DNA of 64,000 bases from Klebsormidium nitens (lineage: Eukaryota; Plantae; Klebsormidiophyceae): assembly GCA_000708835.1 (NCBI GenBank), contig DF237380.1, positions 14,673 through 78,672 of the forward strand. Reading direction: 5' to 3'. Of this stretch, positions 11,714 to 47,758 are shown in pieces. Positions within the stretch are counted from its first letter, which is position 1; each line of letters opens with the position of its first letter. The notes beneath the pieces were generated by a model that saw nothing but the letters and a program-made list of their open reading frames with translations, had not been told where the DNA came from and did not search any database. Both the position numbers and the translations under genes were made by a program.

Positions 11714-14700
11714 CTACGCCAACTTTTTGAAAGAGATTCTCTCCAGCATCTCCTCAAGAGCATCAACGCAAAACTGGCAAAGCACTTCCGGATCTGGAAC
11801 AACCTCCTTGATCGAACACGCGATGAACTTGACCTTGCCCCGGTAGCTAACAAAATGAACGATGAGGCCTTGTGACGTGCCCACCACTGTGGGCGTGAGC
11901 GTGGTCACAGGGACGCCCGCCAGCGTCACGGGCTCGGCAGGGCCTACCACGTTAGACAGCGAAATGGACGTTTGGACGATCGTACGTTTGGTCGCGAAAA
12001 CGGCCGCCTGCAAAAATCGGGAAGAGCGTGAGGTCGCACGAGTGGCTTCCTTTGGTCGTCCGATGGGTTCGTCCTCTTCTTGATGTGCGGGTTCTCTCTG
12101 CTATTCTGTCCGCTGTCGTCTGAGAAAGAAGCAGCTGAGAGGTAGACTAGACGGGACTTGCAATCTACTCGAGACTGTGGACTACGACTTACTGGGCGGT
12201 TTGCAGATCAAGACAGAGCGGGTTTGCATTCGTTGCCCAATAAGCATTGACTCTTGACCCAGTCTCCTACAGCGCTTTGAACATCATACCGCGAGGAGGA
12301 GGAAGAACGAAGTCCGAATCGGACCCCAAACTATGCTCAGCTACTTCGCAGGCTCTCTACATCGGAGAGGGAAGTATTCACTCGCAACCAAGATTACCAA
12401 AGTGTTCCCTGAGACGTCTGGAAACAGACCACACAATCCTGAATATCCTGCCAGGAATAGCCAACCCGGTGAACTCTTCTGCTTCCGTCACACTCCTCCT
12501 AAGATCCCCTTTCTGTATGCAGCTCGCAAAAGCGGAATAGGACCTACCGAGGGGCCGAAACTGTTTAGGATCTGGACGCCGTTCCACGCCGTGAACCACG
12601 CCTCGATGGAGTTCTTTGCCATCGCCGTCTCGCGTCGCACCATCCGGACACGCACCAACGGGTCGCGGACCTGCAGCCGGACGTCAGCGGACGTTAGCGG
12701 CCGAAAAATCGGCCACAGTGAATGGGAGGGCCGGTCGTCTCGGTTCACATTGAGCGAAGAGACAGTCCTTTCTGCTTCGAGAGATATCTTCCTGCAGCCG
12801 GACGTCAGCGGAAGCCAGCGAACATGAGCCGAGTATCAGCGGCCAACCTGTGAGAAGACCGGTCGTTATGAATGGCCACAGAGAAACTATTGCAATTCGC
12901 TTGGAGGCTACTCCTGCAGCCAGACGTCAGTAGACGCCGGCGGACGTCAGCAGACGGTCAGTTGGCAGGAGCTATTAGAAAATCGGTCGTTCTGACTTAG
13001 AGGATCTGATGATCTCTAATCCACCTTTGGAAAAGGTGGACCTGCACCCGGACGTCCGTGGACGGTCGGTTCACCTCGGTCTAACGGAGGACCCGGAGCA
13101 GGACGTTCGGAAAGGGCCAGCGATTGCTTTCGTCAGACCTGAGTTATCTAGCTTAACGTAAAAGAGGCTCCAACAATCATCCAACGTAATCGGTACTTCT
13201 GGGCAGATGTAGGTCTAGCTGCTCAGCATATTTACAACGTAAACTCCCGCGCCTGGAAAGCGAGCCGCCCCGCAAACACCGCGGACAGCGGAGTTCGAAG
13301 AGCGTCCAGTTGGAGAACAAAGGGAAGCAGAATGAAGAACAAGTTTGGAGCCTGGGTTTCGCAAACCAGAAAACTCCTGACCCGGGACCTTCAGCTTCTC
13401 AGGCCCCAATTCGTTCCCCCAGCAAATAGAAACCTATAACAGGAAATGTCTTCCAATCCGACGGTTACAAACACTTGCAAACCCCAAAGTTTCGAAAGTT
13501 TGAAATGCCACGATCTTTTGACCACCTTCAAGAGGATCACGCACCTGATTCACCGGCAGGGGTAGCAAGACATACCCCATCTCATTCCCCCAGACAACAG
13601 AAGAACCTTGCACACCGGTGTTATCCTCCAACTGGCAACTTTTCGAGTCTCGGAAGTCTACACACTTGTTACAAACGACCTGAGAAAAGTCCCAAGAACG
13701 CACCTGGTCCACCGGCAGGGGCAGCATGACATACCCCATCTCGTTCCCCCACCGCGCCTGCGACCCGCCCCGCATCATCGCGTCTAACTCCTGCACCCCG
13801 GGGGACTTCCGAATGTTCACGAGCGCCAAAGCTCGCACTCGCAACCTCTTAGGCACGTACCACCGTTTTCGCGTCTCTCCCCCCCCCTCCTCGGCGGGCT
13901 TTTCGTCCCCCTGTTTCGAGGGGCTGTAACTGCTGCTCGGAAGCTCTCCGTCAGGCTCCCCCGAATCGGTGGGAAGGGCTTCCGAGGGAAGGCGCGAGGC
14001 GAGGCGGTCGGAGAGGGCCTGTGCGCGGGCGGCGAGGCCGTCGACGTCAGCGGTGACGTCAGCCGGGTCGTCGTTGGTCTCTCGCGCCTTGAAATACCTG
14101 TGGGGAGGAGTCTCTTGAGAATGTCGCTAGGAGAAATGAAGCAAAGCCATCGTATATTCCGCTTTCTGGCGCTCTGCTCAGTTAAAAGAAACCGCATCAG
14201 AAACCGAACGACATGATTAATGAGTGGTTTGTGAGAAACCGTCAGTACGTACAGCCAGCAGTGGGCAAAGGGCTCGTCAAACCCGTTATGCCCCTGCGAA
14301 GTTAGCACTGCCCCAGGTCTCAAATTGCTGTTACTGCTGGAATATGGGGCTGTCAAGTAGTCAGTGTATCGGAGAGGAAAGGGGGCAGCTCCGAAAAGCA
14401 TAAGCCGGCCTTTGCACTATTGATTTGTCTCGTTTTGCTAGTGTTTGCAAAAACCCTCCGGATCCTCCTACTCTTAATAGCTTGCGTACAAAACGACCTT
14501 TTTGAGGAGAGTGCCAGGAATCGGGCAGAGGGGCTCAGTCTTTAGCGTATAAAACAATATCCTCTTCCTCGAGACAGTCTTTCCCAACGTTTATATCGGT
14601 CGCACGCCCCCTCAATCCTCACCTGTTGAGCCCCCCCCCTAGGCACGCCACCAACACATCATTTGCGGTTGCGCCCCCCCCCACAGCCCGCGCCACCGCC

Positions 14701-16132
14701 TTCACGTCCGCCAACGCCACTTCGCAACTGCTCGCGAGCACCTTCTCGCAGTGCTGCATCCCGTCTCTCGCTTTCACGGGGGTCTCCGAGTCGCGCACTA
14801 CGGCCGTCATCGCCACGAACCGCCAGATGAGCACAAGCGAGTTCCAGAAGATAATTAGAAACCTCAGCAGTGCCCGGAGCAGTCTCATCACGAGGGGGGC
14901 GTCGCTCTTCTGCGCAGCGGGCCGGGGGTTGGCCCCCGGGATCGAGGGGAGCGCCCGCGCATCCCCGGACTGGCGTGTGGCGGCAATCAGGAGCGCGATA
15001 AGTGATGTGCCGTCGCCCAGGCTATGGTGGATCCTGAGAACTAGGCTGGCGGGACGGCGCGCTCCGGGGGGGTGCGTTAGCAGGTGCGCTTGCCAAAGAG
15101 GGTAGCGGGGGTCGAGGGGGTGCGTCGTGGCCAGCTTTGCGGTGTAGTGCTCTGCGGGGTCGACGGAGGGGTCAGCGAGGCCGACCTCCGAGGGGGCTTC
15201 GAAGACGTGGCGAGAGAGGTCCACTTCCACGGGGCACCACTCGGGGGCGCGGAAGCGGCCGCCCGGCTTCTGCATTCGCAGAGGACGGGACTGTTATGAA
15301 GGAACTTTGTAGCACCCAGGCTAGCCGCAGTCGTGCTGCGATTCCTAGGAAGGGGGGAGACATGTGAGCTACCAAAGAAGTGTCAAATAAAACGTTATGG
15401 CGGTTCTGCAGTTAGAGGGGGGAAGGAAGGCGAAGAAAAGCTTTCCTACCAATGACATGATGACAGGTCAGCTGCTTAACTTCATTCGAGATGGAGTAAA
15501 AAGAAGCGGGGAACACTTGATATATGTAGCCATGGAGGGAGCGCCTAACTTTCAGTTTGTTCTGGTGGGACTCTGTCAACCTGATCTCGCTTTTGTAAGG
15601 GCACTTCCACACAATTGACCATGTGCTTAATGACGTAGACGTCGCTTGATTGCCAGAGCCTATCCAACGCAATTGCAGCCAACTTTTTCACCTCATTGCT
15701 CCTCGCCAGCCTCGTCAATCTAAACCTTGATTTCTGCAGGGTATCGATTGGGACCCTGTACCTGGGACTTCAAGGTATGACATCTGTCCTGAATTGAAGC
15801 ACCAACCCTTGAGCACTCACCATGATACTGTGGAAGCGCCTGTGCTTCACCAGCGTCCCCCGCAAAAACTCCTGCATGTGCTGCAACCCCGGTTTCTCCG
15901 CCAGTCCCACAACGCACAGAATCACAACATTCATGTCCGGCTGCGAGAAGGCTTGCCCGACAGGCGTCACAGGGCTCGTAGGCTCGTCATCAGCAGGCGT
16001 AAACTTCACTGCAGGGCCAGGCTCTGTACGATTCTCGCCGGTCTTCAGCGGCCTCAGCCTCAGAGAAGCGGCCTTGGCCAGCTGTTTAATCCCATCGACC
16101 TCGCGCGAATGACTCTGAGTGGGTTCCTCCAT
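11714..16132 (-). CDS. WSD: WSD-family wax ester synthase/diacylglycerol acyltransferase, multi-exon
   Basis: Exons about 16132-15821, 15272-14624, 14098-13705, 12669-12548 and 12008-11714. Contains RIHHSLGDGTSL (HHxxxDG catalytic motif), PLWQAHLL, WGNEMGY, SNVVGP and SYRGKV (WS/DGAT C-terminal domain). Confidence 0.92.
12640..13110. repeat. Decayed tandem copies of a WSD acceptor junction
   Basis: cctgca(g/c)cc(g/a)gacgtc.g at about 12670 (true), 12791, 12912 and 13040. Confidence 0.7.
13390..13790. repeat. Duplicated WSD exon 3' end and donor
   Basis: gcacctg..tccaccggcagggg.agca.gacataccccatctc.ttcccc at about 13541 and 13700 (true); a remnant at about 13403. Confidence 0.75.
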
Positions 16133-16637
16133 TCCACCTGCGTCAATTCTCTGCCTCAAGCCTGGAAACGTCTCTCCCAACAAAAGCATGCACTGGACAA
16201 GCTTTGAAAGCTGCTTTCAAAAGACCATCTGCTCCAGACATCCGGCACGCATTGCTGCACAAGTGTACCTACACTGACAGTGACAATTGGCAATTGCCCC
16301 ACCTGGAGGTCCTTTTAAGTTTTAGAAGGTGCAGGTGTATTATTCGCAGGTTAAGAAGTTTTACAAGCACAACCTTATTAAGTATTGGCTGCCCACTACA
16401 GTACGTAGTAGTGTTGGCTGAGTACTAGTTCTTCAGATTGTCAAACCTAAACCCATCCTTTAACCCATCCCTAAAACGGTTCAACTTCTTTCACATGGAA
16501 CGATGCTGTACATAGTTAAGAATCAAACTTCAAAGAGAACAGAAGGAAAGTTGGGGAGGGAAAATGCAGCATTGCACCTGTAACGCCCTGTACTGAAGGG
16601 GCAGGCTAGGTACTCAAGGTGCAAGCCGTCCATTCCA

Positions 16638-19600
16638 ATGGCGTTAGCGCGTGCACACATACGCGTCCACTCCCAAACCGCCAGATGTGTGACCACCTTC
16701 CAGAGGCAGCGGCAGCATCTGCTCCAAGAACCACTCCATACTTTGAGCAGCAGAGACCTGCGTGTGCTGACAAGTGGCAGCTCGCCATTCGTTGGCATGG
16801 CCCAAAGGCCCCAGCTACTGAAAAAATGCTTGGAAGCCCAGCCTGTCTTTCAGAAGAGATGTCGAGCGATGGCGACGAGCGCCTCGAATGCTGACGTCAC
16901 CACCGGATCCATCAAGCAACTACAGGGAGACCTGCGCTCGGGCGCCAGATCAGCAGTGGAAGTGGCCAAGGAGTATCTGGAGCGGGTGGCAAAAACGGAG
17001 CCGTCCGTCAGAAGTTTCCTCCATGTTGCGGAGGAGTCTGCTTTGGAGCAGGCGGCCGCAATTGATAGAGCGATTGAGGGTGGGAAGGCACTGGGGCCGC
17101 TAGCAGGGGTCCCCATCGGTGTCAAGGTCAGCGTCTCGCTTAAGGAAGTTGGATCTTGGTCAAAACCTCTGGATCGGTGCTACCAGTTTGTCAAAAGCTT
17201 AATGGTTTCAATCCACGATGCAAGTGGTGGTATGGTTCAGAATGCCAAAATTAGGCAACAACAGACCAGTCCAGTAATCTTACAGGAGTACTCTCAACAG
17301 GCATCCTGAAGGTGGCCAGACCGGGCCAGATCATTGATGAGAGAGAATGTACACTTGTTGCAGCTTCTACTTCACTTGCCTTTCCAGGACTTCTTACAAT
17401 CTTGCAGGAAAAATCTTCTTGCTTGCCACCACTACCACCAAGAAGGCACGATGCAGGCCCTGCAGCCGGTCAAGTTTTGTTGCTTGGTCAGCTTTCTTTT
17501 TCCCCCCAAACAAAGCTCTGATTGACCGAGTCTCTATATTCACGCACTCAGACATTGGTCTGAATGCAACCTCGTCCTCCAAAGCGAAAGTACAGTATGC
17601 TTCAATCAGACATCAGGAAGGATAACTTGTGCATAGTTATGTACTTCTATCAACCTAGTATCTCCTGATTTGTAGCACCCCCTTTCCAGGACAACATCTG
17701 CACAAAGGGCCTCCCCAGCACAGGGGGCTCCCGCATCCTGGAAAACTTTACCCCCCCCTACGATGCCACCGCTATCGCTCGGCTCAAGGCCGCGGGAGCC
17801 GTCATTATCGGTAAGATGAACTGCGACGAGTTTGGCATGGGCAGCAGTACTGAGAATTCGGGTTACCACATAACTGCCAACCCCTGGGACTTAACCCGTG
17901 TTCCCGGGGGGTCTTCCGGGGGTTCGGCGGCGGGCGTAGCGGCGGGACAGGTGATGGCATCGCTGGGGAGCGACACGGGGGGGAGCATCCGGCAGCCAGC
18001 GAGCTTCTGCGGGGTGAGATGTCTAGCCTGCTGAATTCTACCTGTCAGGATGAGCTGGCGGCCTAGGTTAAGTCTAAAAGCAAGGTCTTCAAAGTGCAAA
18101 AGTGCATGACGAAATGATTTCGGTAGTGAGCACGTTCCACAATGTCAGACGCGCATCTCCTGACGCATCCCATTTTTTAATCGGCTCAAGTTCACTCTCG
18201 ATCAAGCCTTGTGTAAGGAGGTCGTTTGAAAGACCACGTGCAGATACCCAAACTCTACCTATTGTTTCACCAAGCACGAAAATCAGTCGTGCAGAATCGG
18301 AGTCTTCTTGACTTAGTGCCCCTGCTCTTGACACCGGCATTTGCCTCCCAGGTTGTCGGTCTGAAGCCCACATACGGGCTGGTGTCACGATATGGGCTGA
18401 TGGCTTATGCGTCCTCCCTCGACTGCATCGGGCCGCTTGCGAACAGTGTTGAGGATGCAGCCATCGTTTTGGGGGCCATGGCGGGGCATGATGAGGCGGA
18501 TTCGACCAGCGAAAAACAGGTTGGTCAGCTGCTTGCCGGCTCTGTCTAACTTAACCCTGGGCGAGTCAGAGCTTTTGCTCGTTGCCAGTGTATGTGTGGT
18601 ATCAGGACCTTGCAAAGACATTTCTACGAATTTTACGAAGCCTGAGTACGTGTGGTACGTTCTATTGCTATCTAGAAGGAGCCGTTTCGTTTTCGAGAAG
18701 AAAGACCCCGTCCCAAATGGCGTACGACCAGCCTCGAATGAGAGTCCGTTTGCAGCCACAGTGTGCTTTTGAATCGAGTGGAAGCCTTCGAGTTCGAGCA
18801 TCTTTACCGCGACTTCTCGATTTCGAACTTTCAATGCGGCTTGTGTTCCTCAGCAGTCTTTTCCAGAAACGGACGCCAAGTCTTGTACGTTTACAGATTC
18901 ATCTGCTGCGTCCATAAATGACAAGAACGCCCCACTTCCTCATAGGCACACTCTCTGCAGACTGCGACTGGTCTTTCATTTTTGCTTTTCTGGTCTCCAC
19001 GAAGGCTCCTTCTCGAGTTGCCAAGACTTGCGTCAGACGTGCGCTACCCCAAAAATAATACTTCCAATCCACCTTTCTAGGAAGAGAAGTCCAAATACTT
19101 CATTTCTTTGATACACCAAGGCGCCATACGACCCTCCTCGGCCCAGCTCCCGAATGCTTCCCCTCTAGATCATCCCAACCTTTTTGACATCCTGACTTTC
19201 TCCCACTTGGCAGGAGGTATTGACTTATTTCTTGAATATATATGGCGCCTTCGACATTTCTATGCGCCATTCCTATGCCCAGGTGCCGCAATGTTCCACT
19301 TATGCAGGAAGTGCCTGACTACACCGCCAATTTCCGCCCGGCCAGAAGCTTGATAGCCGGCCCCGCACTGGTGTGCGCCGAGGACTTATTCCTCAGGCAG
19401 TGCGTAAAACCCTCCACATTTCGATTCCCAACTTTTCTCATCCTCATCTCGCCAATCTCTTCGAAATTTGCAGAAAGTTCCCGACTACACCGCCAATCTC
19501 CGCCCGGCCAGCGAGCTCGACAGCCGGCCCCTCGCAGGTGTGCGCTTGGGGCTCATCTCGGAAACGATGGGGGAGGGGGTGGATCCGGGAGTGGTTACCG

Positions 19601-22600
19601 CAATCCAAGCTGCCGCGGCGCACTACGAGCAACTCGGGGCCGTTGTTGAGGAGGTGGGTCTCGCGTGCCTCTTTCTGAAATACAGTGGCCAAGAACAAGG
19701 ACTGCAGAAATTGCTACAACCCTTGCCCTCACAAACAGAGATCAAGCTTACAGCAATGATCTCTGCTTCATCAATATCGTTCGGGGAACCTCCAGAGAAA
19801 AAGCCCTTTCTGTTTCAGAATGCACTGACGTCGTCGCGTTGTTGACTGTGCCAGGTGTTGCTTCCTTTTTCCGGCAGGGGCTTTCCTGGATGCTGACGTC
19901 AGCAACGCTTTTCCACTGTGCCAGGTGTCGCTCCCGTCTTTCCGGCAAGGGTTGCCCGCCTATTACGTGCTGGCACCGTCGGAGGCCTCGTCGAACCTCT
20001 CACGATACGACGGAGTCAGGTGAGATCAGCTCAGTACCTCACAACGCACTGAGCGAACGTTCTCACCTGTTCCTCACAGCTCCCTGCTTGAAGACGTGTT
20101 GCCCCCTAGCTTTTCTGCTGAAGCGCTTCAGATGAACAGGGGATGGGGTTACGGTGTGCAGAGAACGCACACAGGATGAGGATCTCTTGACGCCGTTCGT
20201 GAAACGCAACGCCTCGCCGAGGCCCGAGCTTGGGAGCCAGTGGCTTCGAAAGCTTGGGCTGAGAGTACCGCAGATGCATCCAATGTGTCGCCTGGATCCA
20301 CCCAATTTTGTGCCCTCGTCGCTTTGTCCAACTGTCCAGAGACCTGTGGAACTTCGCAGTTGGTGCACTTTCGCGTCACATGATGCGAGCTGGTCTTGGG
20401 GTTCGCTAATGCATCTGTTAAAGCAGGTTGCAGAAATGTACGCCGAAATTGCAGCATCTCACACGAGAGCCTGACCTCTGAATCTGGTGATGGACACGTG
20501 GTCTTCGGCGGCAGGTACGGTCTGCGAGTGGAGGGCGACGAGCTGACGTCAATGTACGGAAAGACGCGCGACCAGGGGTTCGGCGCGGAGGTCAAGCGGC
20601 GGATCCTGATGGGCACGTACGCGCTCTCGGCAGGGTACTACGACGCGTTCTACAAGCGAGCGCAGCAGGTGAGCCGGCGGGCGGAGCGCCTGTGACCAGA
20701 GTTTCGGCCTTTTAGCTTTTGGGGTTTTGCAGTCCTGAGGGAAGTTATTTTTTTGGCAGCCCTCTGGAGGGACCCTTGTTTTCCCAGGATTAGTACATAT
20801 GGAGAACGGGACCTGCCGGTTCTTGACGTCTCCCCACATCGGGCGTTTCATGCCCAATTCAAGAGAGCCCAGATCGTCCAAGCTAAGCACGCTTGTAACA
20901 GTGCGTGCCTGATGAGCCACTCGGTTCTCGTGCTCTCTTTTATCCGGTTCTGAGAGATCGATCGGGAGGTCCACTCCGGCTCTGGTGAAAGTGCCCGCTC
21001 GGGGTTGACTTTCTGAATTGGTGCGTCGAGGAACTTTGTTGTAGAACGTGGTACGTCGTAGATCGGGGACCAAAGTGGGAGGAGAAGGCTCCGTGACCGG
21101 CAATTTGGAATTCTGTGTAGCCGCGTTTTTGGACAAAACTTTAGGATGAATGTCAGGATTCGACTGAGTCAAAGTTCGTCTTGGCGGCAGGTTCGACTGC
21201 AGTACAGCTGTTTGCGTCCAAATTGCCACCTTTACCTCCAGTCGGAAACCTTTGACACGATCTTAGACCGTCCGATCAGCAGAAGCTGGCCATCCGGACT
21301 GCCTAAGATCGTAACCGGCGAACCTCGCAGCTTTCGAGGGTGCAGATTTTCATGCAAACAGCTGTCCCTGAAGTACCCGGTTCTGCGGTCAGGCTCAGCC
21401 CGGCACGGCCCCTAAAGTGGGTCTCTGCTCTTTCACCTTCATCATAGACGGCTTTGGCCAGAGTAGGGGTTCGACTTTGACTGTTGATTGCAGGGAAGAT
21501 TACAAGGCGGGCGTTCGGGAGTCCTCTGCGAAGCCCGCGTTCCCGGACGCGCGAGTTCAGCACAGAAGAGTACGTCGGCAAACAAACCGGCAGAAAGACG
21601 ATATGTGTCCTCGCCTCAGAAGCTTTTGCGCTGCCCCGCAGGTCCGAACGCTGATACAGAGAGACTTCCAGTCCGTCCTGTCAAAGTACGATGCGCTGCT
21701 GTCACCCACGGTGCCCACAACTGCCTACCAAATAGGTGAGCCATCACATATTGGGGCCTTGCTCTCGCGGCGGCCTCGCTTCGCGAGGTTTTCTCGATTA
21801 TGGCCGCCTCGCCCAAGACTCGATCCAGGCTGTTCTTGGAATCGAGGCCGTCCGATGCTTTAGAGTGGGCAGTCTAACGGCACAGATTTGCAACTGGTGG
21901 AGGTCGAAGTCGTGTCGAGTGGCCCACTTTCACAAAACCTGCAGAGAAAGGAAGTTGCAGCTCCTGCAACGTGTCAGGCTTTCGGTGTCCTCTTTTGGGG
22001 CATGTATCACTGATGCGGCCGACTCGGCACGACTTGACGGGAAGCTTGCTTTGTTCAAATCCGGTCAAGTTGACACCGTCCAGTCTGGACTCTGCGTGAA
22101 ATTCAAGCGGATGTGAGATACCTTCACACAGAGACACGTCTTTAGCAGTCGGTCGGAAGCTGCCTTGGCGACCCGTCGACCGCAATCAGAGTTTGATAGT
22201 CGCCTTGCCATGCAGGAGAGAAAACGGAGGACCCGCTTTCTATGTACGTGGGGGACATCATGACCGTGAGTTGATTGACCCCCCTTTCGAGGAGTGTTTG
22301 CACTGTGAAACGTGTATGTACAATTTCTCCACAGCATAGGTGCCGATACCGTCGATTTGACTGGGCGTCCTGAAACACTCCAAATGAAGGCGGTTTTCAC
22401 CGCGCTCCGTTTCAGTGCCAACTACAGTCTCCAAGGCTAACTCCACCTTAACCCGCGATTGACGTTATCATCGGGTAAAGTTCGAGCAGACCTCTTGGTA
22501 CTTGAGAACCGTTGCAAAGAAAAGAGGCAGAACACAGTCGATTCTCGGACGGAGTCGATAACATTGACCATACTAAGTTTATGTAGTCGGCTTCAGCCCT

Positions 22601-23934
22601 TAGGAACTGCGAGTCACTCTGAGGGTGCGCTCGCAGACTCTCCCTGACTCTTCTGACCTGTCGCAAACGTACTTACTTGGGTCGCTGTCACTCGTTTCAT
22701 CACCCGGACAGTTTTCGGACGGGTTTGAAAAACTTCTGAACGTCTGGAACCTTCCGACCGCTGGGATCCCAGAGCCTGCTCGCGGCCAGGGTACAGGTCC
22801 CCCAAAACCTATGATATTGTTTCTCTATTTGAGCTGATCCGCTTGTCACGTCTAAGTCAGCTTTCTGCAGCACCAATCCGATAGGCCCTGCCGTGCGCCC
22901 CTTACCCGCCCCGGTTACGCGTGCAGGTTAACGTTAACCTGGCAGGGCTGCCAGCGCTCGTCGTCCCGTGCGGTCTAGACCAGGGTTTGCCGGTCGGTTT
23001 GCAGCTCGTGGGCCCCGCGTTTGGAGAGGTCAGTCCTCGCTTGGCTTTACTCGCTTGCATTTTAAGGTCGGGCCTCTACACTTCTCTTGCTGCTGCCCAA
23101 TCGTTCTGGTCTCGCCTTGATCATCGAAACCAAGGCACTGTCAGAAACAGCGTTAAGCGTCTTTACTATGTTCGCTGCGCAGACGACTTTGTTTTAGGGC
23201 TTATAGGTCATCCTTCAGAAGTCATTGCGATCAAAGATGGGACTACTTGTTGGCTCAAGACAAACCTACAGATGTCGTCTAGATCAGTCCAGCTTCGCTG
23301 CTGTGCAAAAGGCGGAGTCGCACGGGAGAGCTCACCACAGGCACCTAGCAGTCCTATCCAGAGACCGAGTTTGTTGGTTAACAACTCAAGCAACCAGGAT
23401 CTTCAGAGAAGCAAAATCGAAGCTTTGGCTCCTTGAACGGCCAAGCTTCGTCAGGGTACTGACTGTTTGCACCAGCAAAAGGTCGTCAAATCTCGGTATG
23501 CTGCTCCAAGCTGCTCATTCTGCGCCCTGAGTACCTTCAAACCCTAAAACCCGAAAACCCTAAAACCCGAAAACCTGAAAAATCTAAAAACCGCAGTGAC
23601 CTGTGTCACAGTCTCATGCGCCACAAGAGGAGCTCTATTTTCACATCCACCTTTATGTCTTTGATCCCGGGATCCCTCACCCTTCGGCAACCAGAGACAG
23701 CGCAAAGCCCCGTATTGTTTGCCAATGTAAAGGCAAACATAGTCGTTCGATGCACGAAGCTCTGAGGACTCGATCTTTCAGAAGTGCGCCTTCCGGCGCG
23801 CCGCCCTCTTTGACTCAACGGTCACACTCCTCTCCTCTTTGCAGGCCGAGTTGTTGCGCTTGGGGCACGTGTTTGAGCAGACCAACTCTACCTGGCGGAA
23901 TGCCGATCTCCCAGAGCTGGTTGTAGCTCGATGA
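16638..23934 (+). CDS. gatA: Glutamyl-tRNA(Gln) amidotransferase subunit A, organelle-targeted, about 10 exons
   Basis: Exons about 16638-17127, 17689-18014, 18352-18520, 19477-19654, 19926-20018, 20515-20667, 21642-21735, 22216-22266, 22927-23028, 23845-23934. Amidase signature [75 protein letters not shown]. The N-terminal extension resembles a transit peptide. Confidence 0.97.
19290..19960. repeat. Duplicated acceptor/exon-start segments in gatA introns
   Basis: gt.cc.gactacaccgccaat.tccgcccggccag at about 19311 and 19477 (true); actgtgccaggtgt.gct.cc.t.ttt.ccggca at about 19846 and 19916 (true). Confidence 0.75.
23150..23450 (+). pseudogene. Decayed group II intron reverse transcriptase/maturase fragment in the last gatA intron
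   Basis: [41 protein letters not shown] matches RT5-RT6 (YVRYADDF.IG..G.....IK..I..FL...L). A downstream KIEALAP*TAKLRQ resembles the maturase LxAP..I..KL segment. Confidence 0.75.
23538..23592. repeat. Interstitial telomere-like (CCCTAAAA)n degenerate tract
   Basis: aaaccctaaaacccgaaaaccctaaaacccgaaaacctgaaaaatctaaaaacc. Confidence 0.6.
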
Positions 23935-36881: not shown

Positions 36882-37176
36882 GGGGACAGCTGGCAAGAGC
36901 AGATGACAGCTGTACTTGAGCTATCAAAAACCAAAGGGCGCGCGTCAGCTGGCGCAAAATACTGGTGCACTGGGAGCTGCAGAGAGAAACTGAGAAGAAG
37001 ATTGAAGGAGGAGCTGACAATTGGTCTGTGAATGAAAGACCGGACCTAAGCTTCGCTTTTAAAGTTGCCTTCGCTCATTGCCTCTGTCCTGACGGTGCCA
37101 GTAGCTGGACAGCTGCGCCAGTGGAGTTGTTGGTGGAGCAACGTTTGCTCAATGATCACGCAAGCTCAAGCGAACT

Positions 37177-37200
37177 TTTCGCCTTTCCGGACCCCACGGC
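37177..37200. promoter_or_regulatory. Conserved upstream motif (copy 2)
   Basis: tttcgcctttccggaccccacggc, about 305 bp upstream of the ATG. Confidence 0.45.
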
Positions 37201-38141
37201 GCTGCATGCTCATCCAGAGCATACTTTTAACAGTGCTCAATGAGCTAGGAGGCCGAAGTCAGTACTGGCAGGCTGCATGAGCTACTGCCACTGGTTACCA
37301 CCCCTGCATGAGCCGCCCTCTGCCATGTGGGCCTGATGATAGGTACCTAGTATACCATGGCTAGAACTAGAAGTAGGTAGGTACCAAGTGGCAAGGGGCC
37401 GGTGCAGTTCAAAGACCTCTAGAGTCTAGAAGCCCCGGGCACCTTGACCAAAAACTCTAACTGAAACAACGTGACGCGCCCCGGAGCCCCCACCCTACCC
37501 ACCGTCCCTTAAACCACCATGTAGAATAAACAATACCCGTCCCCCGGGTGCTCCATCCTTCGCGGACAAAGTAAGTACCCGTACAGGTACCAGGGTACAC
37601 CGTACGCATCATGCATGGCGTCATGCTGCACAATCATAGGTACCGTAGGTAGTTCCTGAGCCTTGTGCAGGAGCCGCGGGCGCGGCGGTAGTCGCGCACC
37701 CGGCTAAGAATATGGTGTACTATGTTTGTGTTTCGAAGTCGAAGTCCATTGGCGCCCTCTTTTGTCCAACTCCGCTCTGTTGGTTATCCGCCGGAGGCGA
37801 TGGCTGGTCGCCACACGCACCCGTTACCGTCTGGATTCCGAAACGAAACACTGTCGCACCCCGATCCCGGGCTACGCGCTGGGCCCGCGCGGTGTACCCG
37901 ATCACGGTTCACCTGACCCGAAATACTCGCGCGGCCTGACCCGGTTGCAACCTGGTAGCTGTATCTGTATTCCCGCTGCTACAGCGGGGCACGGCGGGAC
38001 AGGTTTTTATCGACTGTATGTTGTCCCGCGCGCGATACCCGCAGGGTATCTCCTGAACCCCCCATAGACTGGGATATTCAGAAAAACGCCAAGTCCATAT
38101 TATAGTATATATATATTATACGATCAAATTTGACCGGCGAA

Positions 38142-38221
38142 GCAGCCCGGTGTAGTGACTAAGACCTTCGCCTATACAGTGAGGTGAGACGCTCGAATCC
38201 CTTCAGAAGCACCTTTTTTTT
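38142..38221 (+). pseudogene. Degenerate tRNA-like (Val-like) sequence with oligo-T terminator
   Basis: gtgtagtg.cta..acc ttcgcct....a.gtgagg...gctcgaatccc resembles the eukaryotic tRNA-Val A-box, anticodon arm and B-box. It has an AT-rich run about 30 bp upstream and T8 downstream. Acceptor and T stems pair poorly. Confidence 0.45.
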
Positions 38222-39699
38222 AACAACTTTTTCTTCAGTTAAGTTGGTAGCTCTTAAGAGTGTTTATAAAGGGTTCAAACAACAACGTAGCCCTTTTGAG
38301 TTAGACGTACATTATCTAAGCTCATTTTTAATAGACGTACATTAGCTAAGCTCATTTTTTATAGAAGGAAACCCTGTACATGATGTCTCGTTTGCTAGAT
38401 ATACATACCGTCATCACTCACATACATTCACTCGAATACAAAATGAACGGACATGATCATATTTCCAATACGTGCAATCAATTGACCATCATGGCATATG
38501 CACACGAGTGATTCTCTAATTGATTGCATGTAATCCATTTAAATGACGTACAAAGCGAATTCGATATGCCCCGTATCTCAACGTCGTAGTATATGCAAGT
38601 TTGCTTTGCAGACTGTTTTATTACTCCTGCATTGCGTCTGCTTCCAAAGGGTTACTACGCAACCATGTCTTGAAACCTTCGTGTCCTAATTCATCTCGCT
38701 TTCTAGAGTACTCTTTGATTAAATCCTCAAGCTTTACCTTCTTTTGCTTCTTAATCGAGTCCCCGCCTGCCTCCTCGTCGGCCACTTCACCCGCCTTTCG
38801 CTTCTTCATTGTCGGGCAAGCATCAATGAATGACCTCATTGCAGCATGCGGATCCCCTAACGTGTCCGTCTTGATCCGCTCCGTGTATATGATTGCCTCC
38901 TCTGCACTTAGCCCTAGAGTCTCCGCCGTGTTTTCGACAAACTTGACAAGTACCTGTAGCCCACTGATCAAGCGACCGACTTCCCTGTCCGCATATTTGA
39001 AGGTTCGATCCTCCAATGCTGCCGCTTTCAATGCATCGATGCTCTGTTTTCCATCCAAGCCGACCTTGAATAAGTAATAAGCTTGCGCCACCTGCGTTAT
39101 CTTTCGGAGAAAATTTAAGGAATAAACATTCTCAACGTCCTGTTGACGTGTCCTTCGAGGCCTCCGTGCCTGACCTTGTTGCGAATTCGTCCCAGCTGAC
39201 GTACCCGCAGCGCCGGTCTCCTGATCGGCAGCATCACGTGCTGCAAAGTTTGCGCGACCACCCGTTGCAGCTGCGGAAGCAGCGGTGGCATGCTGTGATG
39301 TCATCCCTGAGCGGTCGAGGTCGTCATCGGGACCTCCAGCCGTTGCAGCCCCCTGATCTGCGGGTCCCCCAGTTGCTGCGATGAGTGAAATTTCCCCCAA
39401 GCAGCGCTGTAACCGCGTCACAGCTCCACGCAAAAGCCCCACGTCCGTTGCGATGGTGTCCAGACCCGCCTTGATCTGCATTCAAATAAGACTTTCGCCA
39501 TTCAAAAACTGCAAGCCGATTGCAGAAAAAGCCTGTAAAGCCTGTACAGCATGTAAATGCCTGTAAAGGCTTTACAGCCTGCAACATTAGCTGGAGTAAC
39601 TTTGCATGAGTGAATCCGGGTTTGGCAAGCCAGAACCATCAAACCGTACACTAATTGAGTTGGAACCGCAGTCTGGTTACCTACGAATTCAGGGTCTGG

Positions 39700-39900
39700 T
39701 TGGGTGAGCAACCGGGACCTGGTTGAGGTTAACCAGACTGTGGTTCTGAGCCAGACTGTGGTTCTGAAGATGTGGTTAACCAGACTGTGGTTCTGCGGGT
39801 CAACCAGGCCTGGTTAGAGCCGCTAACCAGACCGGCCTGGTTGCGGTTTGATTAGCTCCTGGTTAGCGAGTCTGGTTAGCTGCGGAAATTTCCCTGTGAA
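39700..39900. repeat. CTGGTT/AACCAG-rich intron element, copy A (in Crypton intron 9)
   Basis: cctggttagagccgctaaccagaccgg...gagtctggttagctgcggaaatttccctgtg; homologous to 43480-43660. Confidence 0.7.
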
Positions 39901-42559
39901 CGGAATAGCTAGCCTAGAAAAATCATCATCAAAGGTTTGGACCAATCTAAGACTCATAAGTCAACGAAGCAGAAAGGTGAAACTCGACAAAATGTGACGC
40001 TCGGGCACCGACATCTGTTCTGACGACAGAGTCAATTCGGTTTCTCACCTCGGCCCCTGGGACCTCTGGCCGCTCAACCACGTCCGGAAGCTGGTCACGG
40101 CCTTCTTCCGCATCAACGACCTCCTTCACGAACTGAAGCCAGAGTTCGGCGTGCTCCGCGTCAGGGTCCATCAGGACATGGTTACACAGAGGATGGTCTG
40201 GACACCGGTCGTAGACCAGAGCAAGATGCTGATAGACAATTTTCCGCAGCGGCCCTGTAAGCGCCCTGAGGAACTGCTCGGCCGACATGTCACGCTCCAA
40301 TTTTTTTGGGGCCGCCTTCCGCTCGCCCTTGTACTTGCTGATGAGAGCGTGCCTCTGCACACAGAAGGGCCCATTCCGATGAGCTTTGCGTGCTAAGCAG
40401 GAGAAGGCAATTTCATATTAGGGTATCAGCTCTCTAGAAGAGCTTTTCTGAACCGATTTTCGAACACCATGCAGAGGTTGCGCGGCACAGTCTTTACTGC
40501 AGCACAATCTGACCTTCATGCAAAGACTAACTTCTGAGCCATTGCAAAGCACAGATCACAGCGGTCCGCTCCTACGAACCTTTGAGCACACCAAAGATGA
40601 CCTTGTCGGCAACTTACCGCCACAACCTCTGCTAGCTGGCTGTCGGCCTTTGCGAACAGCATGGGGAGGCCGTCCGGAACATCCACATGGAACCGTGGTA
40701 GATGATATGCCTGCTTCAGTGGAGGGAACCCGCTCATCACGAGAAGCGCCTCAGGGGGTATGTTGGTCAGGTAGCTTAGGAACATGTGGGCATATACCCA
40801 GTGCCCAAGCCGAGCAATATCTGACTCGGACAACCTGCAAGATGGACGATCGAACTCGATGAAAAGCTTATTTAAAAAGAAATGAAACGGCTCCTGACTC
40901 GAATTGGCACGCAACACCTTTCATTAGCCGAGCAGACAACAATTATACGTGGACGGTGACCGAGACAAGCAAGTGCGGGACTCCATATCTAACGGTAGTC
41001 AGACTAGGCTCCCGTCCTTTTGACGGCCTTCAAAGCAACCGTTCTTTGGCCAGCGGCCTTCAAAGCAGCTTTCAGGAACCAGCGTGCAAGGTACCTGTGG
41101 CATGAGAGTCTGGGATCTCACCCTCCGAGGTCAGCCTCCCGTGCACCGACACCCCGAAAGGAGTGTGTGACTTTCGAAGAGCTGATTCCAAGCGCCGCAA
41201 ATATCCCGCACAAGTACTGGTAGTGTTGGTCGAACCGCAGTGGGACCAAAGGGGAGCGAGCATCGCCGGGAAACAACCAGTACAGGTACCCAGAAATCAG
41301 ATTTAAGCATTTCGGGTTTTTCTCTGGCAAGTTCTAGATTGGCATAGTCGCGTGTCACACGGACCAAAGTTCCCGAGCAGGTGCTCAGGAAAAGAAAGCC
41401 GGTCTGCAAGTGCTTGCAGACAATGAAAGAATAAAAGGAAAGACAGAAACGATTGCTACACACACGATGGCCCTTGCTTACCAGGAGCTGGGAAATGGGC
41501 GCATCTCTTGCTCGCTTGCCGCTGTCTGGTTACCCGTTGGGCTACGGGCGGCAACAGGTGTCCGCTCAGAGCTCGAAGTAGTTGAAGCCCCGTCGGCCGC
41601 TGCTGAAGTGGCGGCAGCGGGTGACTGGGCGGCTCCGCCTGCAACAGGACTCAACAACGGGCTCCCGTCTGGCGTTAGCAGCTGTGGTCGCTCGCTGTCA
41701 TCGGAACCACCGTCATCAAAGTCCTCGTCCTCCGCCTCCCTGTATCCGGGATCCTGCCGCAACTGCCGCTCGTACTCAGCTTCTGTGCCCTCAAAAGGGG
41801 CCCAGTCTGGGTAGACGTCTTTGGGAAGTCTCCACCGAGTGTCTGGGAATGGCTCATTCAACACCTCCCACCGGTAGTACAGAAGGAGGCCAAGAGCGCC
41901 GAACGCGCAGCGCCCCCACTTCTTGTGCTGAATGAGGCCAATCATCTGTTTCCGCCCCTCCTACAAGGACACGCAGAGAACCAATTACAATTCCGAAATT
42001 CTACAGGGTAACGCGTGCCAGGTACAAATCAAGCCGAATACCCTTCAGGAAAGGAACGTTCAAACGCGTATAAGCCTAGATTGCCAAGGGGCCTCATACT
42101 TGTCAAGAACACTTTGTGAGCACCCCGTGAGAAGATCTATTCTTAAACTCAAAGCAAACATCACGGAGTCGATCGTGCAATGGACAAGACAAACAAACAC
42201 CTGATATGATGGGCTGGGCGCTTACAGCAAAATCTCACACTTAATGCGTGCCAAGAGCTATGCGCGCCAGCCACTTACTTTGTTCTGCTTCCCTCGATCG
42301 GTAACCAGGCCCAGCATCCAACACTCGGTCGGGCCTATGGATTCCTGCTTGAGGGCGAAGAGGTCGCACAAATTGAAGCCACGTGTCGTGTCTCCTCTGC
42401 CCAAAGATGAGTGCTGTAGTGCCGACATGGCTCTGCAAGAAAACAAGAATGTAAATCAAATCTGCAAAACGAAAGCGCAAGGTTCCCAACGCCAGCAAAG
42501 AAGACCAGCTAACGGTTACTGTCAAAGCGAGTTCGAACGGCCGAGCGGCTATGACGTTA

Positions 42560-42790
42560 GCAATCAGTCTGCTGACGTCACAGCAAGTTCAAACGCGCGG
42601 AACCAAGCGGCCAAGCCCCTCCGACGTAAGCAATCAGCCCGCTGACGTCACAGCAAGTTCAAACGCACGGAATCAAACGGCCAAGCCCCTCTGATGTCAG
42701 CAATCAGTACGCTTACGTTAGGGCAAGTTTGAAAGAGCGGATCGAACGGCCAAGCTCGGCGCGGACGTCAACAATCATTCCGCTGATATA
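42560..42790. repeat. About 70-bp tandem repeat, three copies plus a partial, in a Crypton intron
   Basis: caatcag..cgctgacgtcacagcaagttcaaacgc.cggaa.caa.cggccaagccc repeated. Confidence 0.75.
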
Positions 42791-43479
42791 TTAGAACAGA
42801 TTTAAAGGAGCTAACTTGAACGGCGGAGCGCCTCTGACATACCTCATTGAAAGCGCTTCGAATACTTTGTCGTAGTCTTCGTCCATGTTGTGGTGCCAAG
42901 CATCGTCCAACATCTTGTCCAACATGTCGGTGAGCTGATCGTCGGAGTAACCATCGGACACCGCCCCCTCTTGCCGGTCCAGAAACTCTCTGCAGCAGCA
43001 TGACTCTCTTTGGCAACCGTGTACATATAAAGTTTGAAGACATCTTGAAGACCACGACTTCCTTCACGACGGCTGAGACGAACGGGACGGACATTCTAGA
43101 TAGAAAGTGCTTCAGAGAGCACCACTGCAAAGCACGTATGCACCAGCTTTTCTCACTTACTCGCGTGCCCGGGTGGCTGTTTGTCGTGCAGCGGCTCGCA
43201 GGCATGTCTTCACGGAGGGAGTCCGCAGGTCGTGTGTCACCCGCACCCCCCGCATGATGCACTGGATCTGGTGGGTGAAGACAAGAGCTTTGACGTGGTC
43301 CTCCACAACGCTGTAGCTCTGCAAAGGAATATGGAGTGAATTGGTGCCACATGTATCTCAGATCGTGTGCTCGAACTCGCAAAGCTTGTTGCAAGTCACA
43401 CTTGCTCCAACCATTAATCAAGCAGAAAAGTTTTGTGAGAAAGCTGATTGCACGTAAAAGCATAAACAGAGTCCAGTCT

Positions 43480-43660
43480 CAATTGATCGACCAGACTCTG
43501 GTCACCACCAACCAGGCCGCCATCGAGTCTGGTCAAGCTTTTGGAGTATGGTTCACGAGCTAATCACGCCTGGTTAAACCGCTAACCAGCCCGGTCTGTT
43601 TATGGTCTGGTTTTAGGGTCTGTTTAAAGAGTCGGGTTAGCAGCGAAATCTCCCTGTGTT
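43480..43660. repeat. CTGGTT/AACCAG-rich intron element, copy B (in Crypton intron 2)
   Basis: cctggttaaaccgctaaccagcccgg...gagtcgggttagcagcgaaatctccctgtg. Confidence 0.7.
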
Positions 43661-46600
43661 AGTCCTCACCTTCCGCTTTTTCATCCCCCCTGGCCCAATG
43701 ATGGGCTGGGTGAGGTTGGCAATGTATGATTCAACCCTTTCGGGGGTGATCAATACCCCCTTCCACCACCACTCTCGTGGTTCCAATCCCACCCCCAAAC
43801 CAGAGGGCTCGTTTCTGAACTCCCGCATCTCGTCCCACCTCGCTTCGACGTCGGCCTCTCGAAACTTGTTGCGGAAGAACACCTGAAGTTGGACAAAAAA
43901 CATTGAATGATTCACTTTATGGCCAAACCAGTAGTTTCATTGCTCCCAATCTCTAGCCAGCTGATTGCTCCTCTAAATTGGGTCGATGAGCGGTCAACAA
44001 AAATCTAGACAAAAGCACAACCAGACAACCAGTGCAATTTCCACCGCTCGCCGATTGCCAGGCAAACATGCTTGTGCTTGTAGCATTCCGCAATTCACGC
44101 GACTTCAGACCTGCAGCAAGCCGAGCACAGTAAAGCCAAAGATGCAGAAACTTGAAAGCTAGCCTTCGCTTCTCCGCTGCACTGTGCACAAAGAACGATC
44201 ATCAGTTGCATAGCTTGCAAACAGTTTTGTTGCCTACCTGAAACTCCCCGGTCCGCGAAAGGTACTTCCCTTGGCTCCGTGGAGCTAGCGTGGCGATGTA
44301 CTGAAGAGCAACTTTCTTACGATCATCCAGACTCGGAGCCATAAGATCTTCTTGCAGCACAGTCTGGGCCGCAATAGATTCAGCCTTTGCTTCTTCAGGA
44401 GTGCTTGGAGGGTCACCATGGCTTGGCAACCCATCATCGTCGTTCGCATCCGACTCCCCATCTGCATCCGATTCTGCAGCCTGAATTGCTGCACGCTGTT
44501 GTGCTCGCTGCATTCTGGCACTTATGCGTTTCGAGACACGCCGCACCGGTGTCCCTTGTTCAGAACCATCTGCACCACCTTCGTCAACACTGGGGGAATC
44601 TAGGTGCTGCCTTCCAACATTTGGTGAATCTAAACCTCTATCGTGAGAAAACTCAAACGGGTGGCCAGCTCGACGCTGAGGTTCAAAAGGGCTTGCAGAA
44701 TGCTGAAAGTAACGGGGACGCCGTCTTTCAAACTCGGGAGACGCTGGACTATCTGCATTCACAAAGAAGCCAACCGTTAGTATGCGTCGCTTTGCTTGCT
44801 GTTCAAATCAACTCAGCTGACTTGACTCTCAATACACCGGGCAACTAATGTCCAGCTTCAACTGCTGCTGTACACTCACAGCACACGTTACAAATTGAAA
44901 CATAACAAGGAACTGAGCTCATGAGAAGGTCTGCCAACATTCAGACAGATTTGCAAGACAAGCTTTTCAAAGTCTCTGTTGGGTTTCAACTTGTCCTGCT
45001 GCCCCTCTCAAAAGGTCATTCTGTAAGCTGGTCTCGAACCAGGAACAAGTTGATAAGCAAGATCAGAATATAGAGCAAACATTTCACCACTAACATCTAT
45101 GTTTTGTAATGTTCACACCCTATTTTCCAAATCCTAATGTGCTGGAAGTACCAATTTGGCACATGCTGGAGATAGGCTAAGATAATTTGGTGCTGGTCTT
45201 GCAATTCAAGTGGCACTTGCAACTGTCTCACATCAGTAAATGGGAGCTCAAGCTTGTTGAAGGGCAGCTCACCTTCAGCAGAATTCATCCTTGGCTATCT
45301 TGCTTGAGTAAAATTACCATGCTTTGTGCCAACTCTAAACGAGTGCTGGTACTTCTTTAAGTGAAAACCCAAAGTATGGCAGCTGTTTGGTAACGGTATG
45401 TCCTCCTTGTTTCAGCTGGCACCACCGGAATTGACTATCTTTTTAAAGCTGTTTCAGCCCCGTTTCAGCATTGAGCAAAAAGCAATCCACCATTGCTACA
45501 TTGTCACAATTCAGGCTTGGTTGGAATGGCATTGAGGCAATGCTACCATTGGGCTGCTGCTGGTATGCTTTTGTTCTCTGCCTCTCAACAAGCCTCAGGA
45601 CCTTGCTTCTTGCTTCAGCTTGATCGAGCTAACAACTAACTTATTAGGCGCGGCTCCTGCAACAACCTGGTTCCTGCCAGCACTGAATGCTAGCCGGCCT
45701 GCCGGAAGCTGGGTTATAACCTATTGTATGGTCCCTGGTAATAGCTTATTGAGATTGGACAGGCTATAGGCGACGGCTTTCTTACGGCAGAACTGACGTT
45801 GAGCGCTTGATGGTTTCTTGATCAGCCAGGGGGTCACCGACGGAGTCGCGCCGGTCCGGGGTAACACAGTTAAAATTGGAGCGGGACCGGCCGCGCGGCG
45901 GTACGGTGTCCCGCTGCCCCACGGCACCGTGTCCCGCGGAGTGCCCCGTCGCTCGATACGGCTCTGTACGTGTGTCCACTGTCTTGGCTTTCGGGCCCCG
46001 GGGGATCACTCTCACAGATACTTTTCCTCAGTTTAGGTATGTGCTCTGGATAGGATCCTAGATTCGGAAGCTGGATGCCAGTGCGCAGGACGTGACTTTG
46101 AAAGAATTCTGCTCATCGACTCCTCTGATCTCAGTCACTCCAGTACGTACGTCCTGCAGATGTGATGAGAATCGCCAATATTCTTCACCTTCACCCAAGT
46201 ACAGCTGGCAATTCCTGGTGCCTAAACTCTGGCCTGTAGCTTGGGATGGTCATGAAACCAAGAATCATTGATATCTGACGAGCCTTTCAAGTTTTCAGTG
46301 CCGATATCAGTGCTTTACTATCTATGGGGTGATGATCACAATTGATTATATATGCCCACGTCCCCAGCGTGGGCATCACGTGTGCCGCCTCTGATCGGTA
46401 CTGTGCCGAGCGAACTTTTTATGAGGGGCGGTCGCACATGCCCGACTTAGATCGACATACCTACCTATGTAGTTAGAAAACAGCACCTGCACAGCCTTCC
46501 ACTAGTGTACACAGTACGAGACCGGGATTTGGCAGTGCTAATTACGAGCGAGACAAACATATGCATATGAGCATGATACATGTTCTGTTAAAGTGAGGCC

Positions 46601-47758
46601 ATATTGGCCATGATTGGATGAACGGGTATAGGTATACAGCCTCTAACCGACGCCCACTGACTTTAAGCGGCAGTGCTTTGAAATGTTCATCGAGCATCTG
46701 GGCTGATCTGGCCCATTCTAGTACCGGTATAATGTCATTGAACCCGACTTCGCTTCAGAGGTAGCAGCCTGTCCCGGTAAAAGAGCACTTCACAACCCGG
46801 GACTGTCGACAACCAGCTGTGAACCAGCTAGCAGTGAATCAAGCATATAATTACTTTTATTTCCAGCTCTGTACTGAAAGTGAGCGAATGAGTAAATCCT
46901 TGATTTAGTTGAACGGTCATCAAAAGTTGAGGCTACAATGAACCGCAAGTGAGTGAAACTTGCGGTTGATGGCGTTGACACAGCAGCTTCAAGAACGTCA
47001 AGTCTCAAGTGTGTGAAGATGAATCGAACAGTATGTCATTATCGTTCTGTACCACTGATTTGGCCGCCTCGTTGAAATCATGCAGTATTCAGGGCGTTAT
47101 ACAGTTTGCTGTTTCTGTAGTTATGCACCCAACGTCCACGCAGCTCGATATCCTTCGGGCAGCACTTTCCGCTCGCATCGTACACCCTTAAAACTGCTCA
47201 TATGTGGACCGATATGCCTCCACCTACTAGTACAGGTCTCTGATTGATCACAGTCTTTATGAGCGCGGCCGGTCATGGTGCAGGCAAATGGTTGAGAGAT
47301 GCAGCTTCGTTCGATTGGTGGAAGAGTAAATGCAAACGACAACGATAGATGATACTGCACAAAGGATCAGCCGCCACTTCCGTCATCCAGTGACCGGTTC
47401 GAGGTAATTTGAAACCCCTTCCTTTATTCTCCTCCGATTTCAATCTGATCTGTCTACGTCACTATGGTAAGTTTCGACTCACTCCGTCTTCAAATTTCAG
47501 AAACTTGTGCTCCGGAACAGCTCAACAAGTGTGTAGGTTACAGCACCTGACTACGAGTACCATGAAGAGCTTCAGCGGCAATAATGACATGCACAAATCC
47601 TTCTCGACGACGGCCAGAGCGAAAGCTGCTTATGCTCGACTTCAAATGTTCAAAGGGAACTTGAATGCCCAAAGGAGAAGCCCACCTGGGGAACTCTGCT
47701 GAAATTTCAAACGGTTCTAAATGAATGGCTTCCTGAATTCAGGTCGCGTCATATTGTT

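Follow-up and report, generated by a model that had tools for sequence, protein, structure and literature searches.

A gene for a predicted CryptonF-type tyrosine recombinase with ten introns in an enlarged spacer of a tandem gene array

Results

The 64,000-nucleotide stretch of contig DF237380.1 studied in this work (the window) contains, on the minus strand between positions 45288 and 38621, a gene whose 11 coding exons can be spliced in silico into a single open reading frame (ORF) of 1,075 codons. Judged from its sequence, the product is a protein with a central tyrosine recombinase (YR) domain of the NDC10_II/Crypton type and a C-terminal GCR1_C DNA-binding domain. The gene lies in a tandem gene array of co-oriented units with a period of approximately 6.9 kb, in the spacer that separates unit 2 from unit 3. 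Before splicing, the minus strand displays many ORFs, all of them short, and the motifs of the protein are scattered over separate stop-to-stop frames, in agreement with the preliminary description of the locus, which had found nothing of the gene in the raw ORF track. The same description had proposed ten phase-consistent exons between positions 38621 and 44762, encoding about 1,070 amino acids. The ten exons inside this span do yield 1,070 codons without any stop or frameshift, in an arrangement matched by a related contig (see below). The ten exons had thus been recognized correctly. The start had not, as the ATG is in a 16-nt exon (45288-45273) and exon 1 begins only at 44752, and one of the junctions, the TG acceptor of intron 6, is not canonical.

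Splice sites were set by comparison with the 7,597-bp Logan contig L001 (run SRR23617307). In tblastx and blastn alignments the window and L001 share ten collinear blocks with 53-88% identity at the protein and 69-77% at the DNA level. The DNA between the blocks cannot be aligned; only the exons align. Each block is bounded in both sequences by splice sites that coincide in position and phase, and this holds for all ten introns. The exons can be regarded as real, being far beyond chance expectation. The introns of the window gene are 171-573 nt long with 43-51% GC, and nine of the ten are of the GT-AG type. Because exon 1 opens at a conserved acceptor (44752) in phase 1, an upstream coding exon is required. 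This is exon 0 (45273-45288), which has the ATG at 45288, encodes MNSAE plus the first G of the next codon, and ends in phase 1 at the donor GTGAGC (45272). The equivalent mini-exon of L001 has its ATG at 542, encodes MSNSE plus G and is followed by the donor GTGAGT.

In the following, residue numbers refer to the full 1,075-residue product, all exons are on the minus strand and a slash marks the splice junction. Exon 1 (44238-44752, residues 6-177) encodes a poorly conserved N-terminus and starts at the acceptor TGCAG/AT, not at the GTG at 44762. Exons 2 (43670-43882, residues 178-248), 3 (43161-43318, residues 249-300) and 4 (42843-42989, residues 301-349) encode segments that are 73, 77 and 78% identical to L001, respectively; the donor of exon 3 (GA/GTAAGT) is conserved. 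Exon 5 (42279-42432, residues 350-401) carries R362 of the LGRGD motif (codon 42398-42396) and K398 of GKQNK (codon 42290-42288). In exon 6 (41482-41960, residues 402-560) the first approximately 45 residues correspond to positions 83-130 of NDC10_II, and the remainder is an acidic, Ala/Ser-rich low-complexity insert. After intron 6 (41290-41481), exon 7 (41122-41289, residues 561-616) contributes the THSFR motif with H603 (codon 41165-41163) and R606 (codon 41156-41154), and exon 8 (40618-40834, residues 617-689) contributes GHW with W629 (codon 40800-40798) and LSYL with the predicted nucleophile Y638 (codon 40773-40771). The YR domain ends in exon 9 (40049-40354, residues 690-791), which matches NDC10_II 258-312. 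Exon 10 (38621-39475) encodes residues 792-1075 followed by the TAA stop codon (38623-38621), and comprises a predicted helix, a low-complexity linker, the GCR1_C domain (38876-39112) and a basic/acidic tail.

Several introns contain repeats. In intron 4 (42538-42786) a 70-bp unit is present 3.3 times, with the palindrome TGACGTCA in units 1 and 2 and a degenerated version of it in unit 3. Introns 9 (39660-39900) and 2 (43480-43660) contain clustered AACCAGAC/GTCTGGTT repeats in direct and inverted orientation, and the segments 39802-39898 and 43562-43658 are 77% identical. For these two clusters, a small nested repeat or sites of protein binding are possible interpretations.

All catalytic motifs named in the preliminary description are present in the spliced product: LGRGD starts at residue 360, GKQNK at 397, THSFR at 602, GHW at 627 and LSYL at 636. 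They provide a complete R-K-H-x-x-R-[H/W]-Y set consisting of R362, K398, H603, R606, W629 and Y638. No catalytic residue is substituted in any relative (see below) that covers these sites. In the seven copies spanning exon 5 (local matches) LGRGD is unsubstituted throughout and the lysine of GK.NK is always retained. Alignments of five copies each show that H and R of exon 7, and G-H-W and S-Y-L of exon 8, are invariant. The distances between R606 and W629 (23 residues) and between W629 and Y638 (9 residues) are identical to those in Cre, where the corresponding residues are R292, W315 and Y324.

Pfam scans (24,736 families) were run on each exon separately. NDC10_II (PF16787) was the sole family to recur across exons, with collinear matches to its positions 83-130, 189-251 and 258-312. 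The first of these, in exon 6, was the best or the only match in seven family members, with scores of 11.4-18.7 bits: 13.0 for the window, 15.3 for L001, 11.4 for L002, 16.4 for L004, 17.5 for L006, 18.7 (E 9.8e-4) for L008 and 17.5 for L010. The second was obtained with exon 8 of L001 (11.5 bits), and the third with exon 9 of the window (11.7 bits), L001 (16.1 bits) and L010 (13.6 bits). The three exon scores of L001 add up to 42.9 bits, compared with the NDC10_II cut-off of 26.3 bits, and rough arithmetic from the E-values gives a chance of about 1e-14 that three independent exons would pick the same family out of 24,736. In these scans of the window and its relatives there was no match to Phage_integrase or DUF3504. 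Weak matches to 5_3_exonuc_N (E 0.004-0.06), confined to about 25 Lys-rich residues where exon 9 begins, were judged spurious. Neither Ndc10 nor any other YR chain was returned when PDB chains were searched using exon 8 alone or profiles of three exons (6, 8 and 9); from the literature, solved Ndc10 structures are expected to be in the PDB.

For the C-terminus, the preliminary description had suggested a GCR1_C-like domain. Exon 10 of the window matches GCR1_C (PF12550) with 20.2 bits (E 7.6e-4), somewhat below the Pfam cut-off of 23. The suggestion was substantiated by the homologous protein P0002, which matches window exon 10 with E 8.4e-26 and scores 28.9 bits for GCR1_C, above the cut-off. 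A further homologue, P0003, scores 17.5 bits. AlphaFold2 modelled the C-terminus with the GCR1_C domain as entirely helical, at a mean pLDDT (predicted local distance difference test score) of 64, and a Foldseek comparison of this model with the PDB gave nothing below E = 1.

An exhaustive HMMER search of 1.84 billion representative proteins with exon 10 gave four matches only, all of them short ORF fragments. One of these, P0001 (50% identical), sits on L001. Additional relatives were found by word-index searches with exons 6 and 8, after which the contigs were fetched. Nine further contigs, with at least six distinct copies, derive from three outside data sets and have the exon boundaries of the window gene throughout. 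The sources are Logan run SRR23617307 (L001), Logan runs SRR14092358/60 (L006/7, L008/9 and L011) and JGI samples 3300060284/5 in IMG (L002, L003, L004/5 and L010). The search for copies in relatives, suggested at the outset, has thus revealed a family that is multicopy and in decay in these data sets. At the DNA level its subfamilies are 70-80% identical; the two JGI samples contain at least four diverged copies, and runs SRR14092358/60 contain at least two. No annotated full-length protein of the family was found, either by the exhaustive search with exon 10 or by the word-index searches with exons 6 and 8; in these searches the family is known solely as ORF fragments on unannotated eukaryotic contigs (the window and L001-L011).

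Other searches added no members to the family. A word-index search with the whole of exon 10 gave no homologue, the candidate list being dominated by low-complexity words. Four ORFs of the window, looked up exactly, were absent from a collection of 15 billion proteins. Metagenome scans with the exon 8 and exon 7 alignments and a scan of viral contigs produced pattern matches but no confirmed relative.

Every relative shows damage, in the form of stop codons, frameshifts or splice sites that have been lost; among the copies found only that of the window has an intact frame. In L001, exon 9 is frameshifted and the acceptor of intron 8 reads CAA. In-frame TAA, TAG and TGA codons are present in most of the other relatives, and L010 is frameshifted as well. 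A variant genetic code was considered for these stops and rejected, because all three stop codons occur and they align with varied residues (E, Q, K, S, W and R). In L008 (4483-4827) and L009 (1249-1593) exons 7 and 8 are fused, intron 7 and 12 codons are lost, and there is a TGA at the junction.

The products of the window gene and L001 are 67.7% identical; the proportion of differences is 0.79 at synonymous sites (pS, saturated) and 0.22 at nonsynonymous sites (pN). For the YR part the identity is 79% and pN is 0.14. Since synonymous sites are saturated while pN is low, protein-level selection must have operated over most of the divergence. The lineages were selected at the protein level for most of their history and the individual copies decayed later, a pattern which is that of a transposon family rather than that of a domesticated gene.

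The window copy itself has one lesion. Its intron 6 ends in TTTCTG/GTACC, so that the 3' splice site is TG, not AG; the homologous site is AG in L001, L002, L004, L008 and L010. L003, an obvious pseudogene, has AA at this position. Joining the conserved intron 6 donor (TCCTG/GTAAGC) to either of the AGs located upstream (41325-41324 and 41323-41322) leads to an in-frame TGA, and reading through into the intron leads to TGG TAA. There is a single in-frame rescue splice, between a donor at 41533 and an exon start at 41323, which would put 12 other residues in place of 17, among them those of a P-x-P-x-S-W motif that is conserved in the family. As the frame is intact and the intron 6 acceptor is TG, the window copy was either disabled very recently or relies on an alternative splice.

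The gene occupies a spacer (36923-47758) of 10.8 kb; the three other spacers of the array measure 2.0, 2.4 and 2.6 kb. The placement in a tandem array noted in the preliminary description was therefore correct, and the difference in spacer length indicates that the gene is surrounded by approximately 8.5 kb of additional DNA. The element termini fall within this enlarged spacer. The recombinase gene is upstream of an array gene, at a distance of about 1.7 kb. All ORFs of more than 113 codons in the enlarged spacer overlap the YR gene and none of them has a recognizable reverse transcriptase (RT) motif; with no sizeable second ORF, 36923-47758 has no room for an RT/RNase H gene. GC content is 52% in the window as a whole, the values for the gene and its introns are inside the range of the surrounding window, and there is no compositional break.

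When the array spacers were aligned with each other to map the insertion point, no similarity was seen. Alignment of the flanks of the window gene with those of L001 gave chance-level matches only, and no non-coding DNA common to the window and any relative was found. In the 3' tails of six copies, untranslated sequence is shared only inside one subfamily. There the similarity ends about 110 bp past the stop codon, and L001 as a contig ends 95 bp past the stop, which suggests that the 3' end of the element is near the gene. An inverted repeat of 24 nt (75% identical) at 37131/45469, the arms of which are 8.3 kb apart, was evaluated as a candidate for the termini and proved no better than the 19 other pairs, which are chance matches.

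Discussion

The architecture that defines CryptonF elements consists of an NDC10_II-type YR and a GCR1_C domain (PMC3212892). The window gene has both, together with the full catalytic set, and the CryptonF-type assignment made in the preliminary description can be upheld at this level. Taken together with the decayed paralogues, the history of purifying selection and the enlarged spacer, this architecture makes it probable that the locus is a copy of a single-gene CryptonF-type DNA transposon, belonging to an old lineage that has long been resident in the host clade.

By analogy with the published Crypton model, the GCR1_C domain would recruit the protein to the ends of the element, and the recombinase would excise the element using R362, K398, H603, R606 and W629, with Y638 as the nucleophile. 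Such a process would leave neither terminal inverted repeats nor classical target site duplications. The window copy would have landed, or would have been retained, upstream of a unit of the secreted-protein array, within the spacer.

Some of the observations weigh against this interpretation. No single exon reaches the NDC10_II cut-off (11-19 bits each), and the assignment to CryptonF was made from domain architecture, with the reference CryptonF elements compared by description only. The window contains one copy of the recombinase gene and no second one. As the array spacers are mutually unalignable, the term insertion refers to the length of the spacer alone. Finally, in view of the defective intron 6 acceptor, the window copy may not produce the full-length protein.

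Of the competing explanations, domestication, a possibility raised in the preliminary description, fares best. The gene would then be a host gene of Crypton origin with a cellular role such as DNA binding or regulated recombination. The window gene has the sole intact frame among the copies found, its intron-exon structure is stable, it is present once in the window and it has a history of strong purifying selection, all of which would fit a host function. Yet all six catalytic residues have been kept, whereas the known domesticated derivatives have lost theirs (PMC3212892), and the relatives are several diverged and decayed paralogues per data set rather than one conserved orthologue. The gene also bears a splice-site lesion, sits within about 8.5 kb of extra spacer DNA, and has a GC content at third codon positions of 0.60, below the 0.74 of the neighbouring host genes. 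We consider domestication unlikely on these grounds.

Horizontal acquisition was also brought up in the preliminary description. It was considered here as a recent transfer from a fungus or an oomycete, the classical hosts of CryptonF. The combination of NDC10_II and GCR1_C is that of the fungal and oomycete elements, and transfer of a CryptonF from fungi to oomycetes has been proposed (PMC3212892). The window gene, however, has ten introns of 171-573 nt at positions shared by diverged subfamilies in four data sets, its composition is host-like, and at E <= 1e-3 the exhaustive search with exon 10 returned nothing from fungi or oomycetes, the four relatives that it did return all coming from the same small group of data sets. 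Fixed introns, composition and the lack of such a relative at this threshold make recent transfer from these groups unlikely, and favour a CryptonF-type transposon that is an old resident.

Least credible of all is that the locus arose by chimeric assembly or by the joining of a contaminant piece to the array, as co-oriented units of the same array flank the block on both sides with otherwise regular spacing, the composition shows no break, and the introns resemble those of the neighbouring genes in style.

The preliminary description was not aware of Cryptons in green plants. This statement is outdated: CryptonF-1_cRei, drawn with exons and introns and encoding a YR with GCR1_C, is the most active transposon of Chlamydomonas reinhardtii CC-2931 (Lopez-Cortegano et al. 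2023, PMC9977147). It has CACCG ends and uses CAYCG as target; its excision is clean, and it gives rise to inversions and translocations (PMC9977147 and its preprint). Compared by description, it resembles the window element in being a single-gene, intron-containing element with YR and GCR1_C in a green-lineage genome. Its insertions favour gene-proximal intergenic DNA, to which the distance of about 1.7 kb between the window copy and the array gene may be compared. The exhaustive search with window exon 10 did not yield any annotated Chlamydomonas protein, so the two elements are at best distant relatives. There is also a difference in composition, the GC content being about 64% in C. reinhardtii and 52% in the window. 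Given the rearrangements in Chlamydomonas it is conceivable that a recombinase of this type could reshape the array, as the preliminary description had speculated. There is no sign of this in the window and the idea gains no support, because all five units have the same orientation and their spacing is regular on either side of the gene.

CryptonF elements of fungi and oomycetes, such as Crypton-Cn1 (Goodwin 2003; Kojima & Jurka 2011, PMC3212892), likewise encode an NDC10_II-type YR with GCR1_C, have retained the catalytic residues and, as the window element, are devoid of RT and long terminal repeats. In contrast to them, the window gene has ten introns and a low-complexity insert of about 100 residues inside the YR domain, and its similarity to them is visible only at the level of Pfam profiles. 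CryptonF elements are bounded by short direct repeats of 4-6 bp that match the target, with 6 bp in the fungal and oomycete elements. The Crypton-derived yeast proteins Ndc10/Cbf2, Gcr1, Msn1 and Hot1 have the Pfam families NDC10_II and GCR1_C in common with the window gene. They are encoded by single conserved host genes and have lost the catalytic site, whereas the window gene has its full catalytic set and its relatives are multicopy and in decay. CryptonA/I (of the DUF3504 type), CryptonS and DIRS/Ngaro elements also use a tyrosine recombinase for mobility. CryptonS differs from the window gene in having no GCR1_C, and DIRS/Ngaro elements carry RT and RNase H beside the YR gene, whereas the window spacer has no such genes.

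The host may be a streptophyte, either a charophyte alga or an early land plant. In that case the locus would represent the first described CryptonF lineage of Streptophyta, an ancient and vertically kept green-lineage clade with ten fixed introns, of which the window copy would be the only known intact representative, possibly mobile by means of an alternative splice. Among the papers of the library searched, none connects Cryptons with streptophytes. We offer this extension tentatively, as one that is rather doubtful at present.

To our knowledge, Cryptons are rare and movement has been seen only for the Chlamydomonas elements. The gene described here adds a member to a known kind of element and does not reveal a new mechanism. 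Coming from a second host of the green lineage, apparently a distant one, this almost intact CryptonF-type gene with its complete model provides a reference for an otherwise unannotated family. The sequence can be used for masking and annotating the family in related genomes, and would help to decide whether the CryptonF elements of the green lineage are old residents or arrived by transfer.

Other features of the window

The array extends from 25513 to 64000 on the minus strand and comprises at least five units in the same orientation, each of about 6.9 kb. The units are genes with several exons that encode secreted, Cys-rich proteins containing a GDPHF motif, and the exons are 66-92% identical between units. 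Five exon pieces of the array genes had no Pfam match. Outside the array, a WS/DGAT acyltransferase gene (11717-16216, minus strand) is arranged head-to-head with a gene for a GatA-type amidase (16584-23030, plus strand); both are rich in introns. A WSD1-like gene has been reported in Klebsormidium and not in Chlamydomonas (PMC4927632). Directly after the last amidase exon, at approximately 23158-23275 on the plus strand, an RT-like motif is present in an open frame, which gave no Pfam RT match at E <= 0.01. Short dispersed or tandem repeats of 64-118 nt, with two to three copies each and 67-88% identity, are located at 4600-5100 and 6270-6690.

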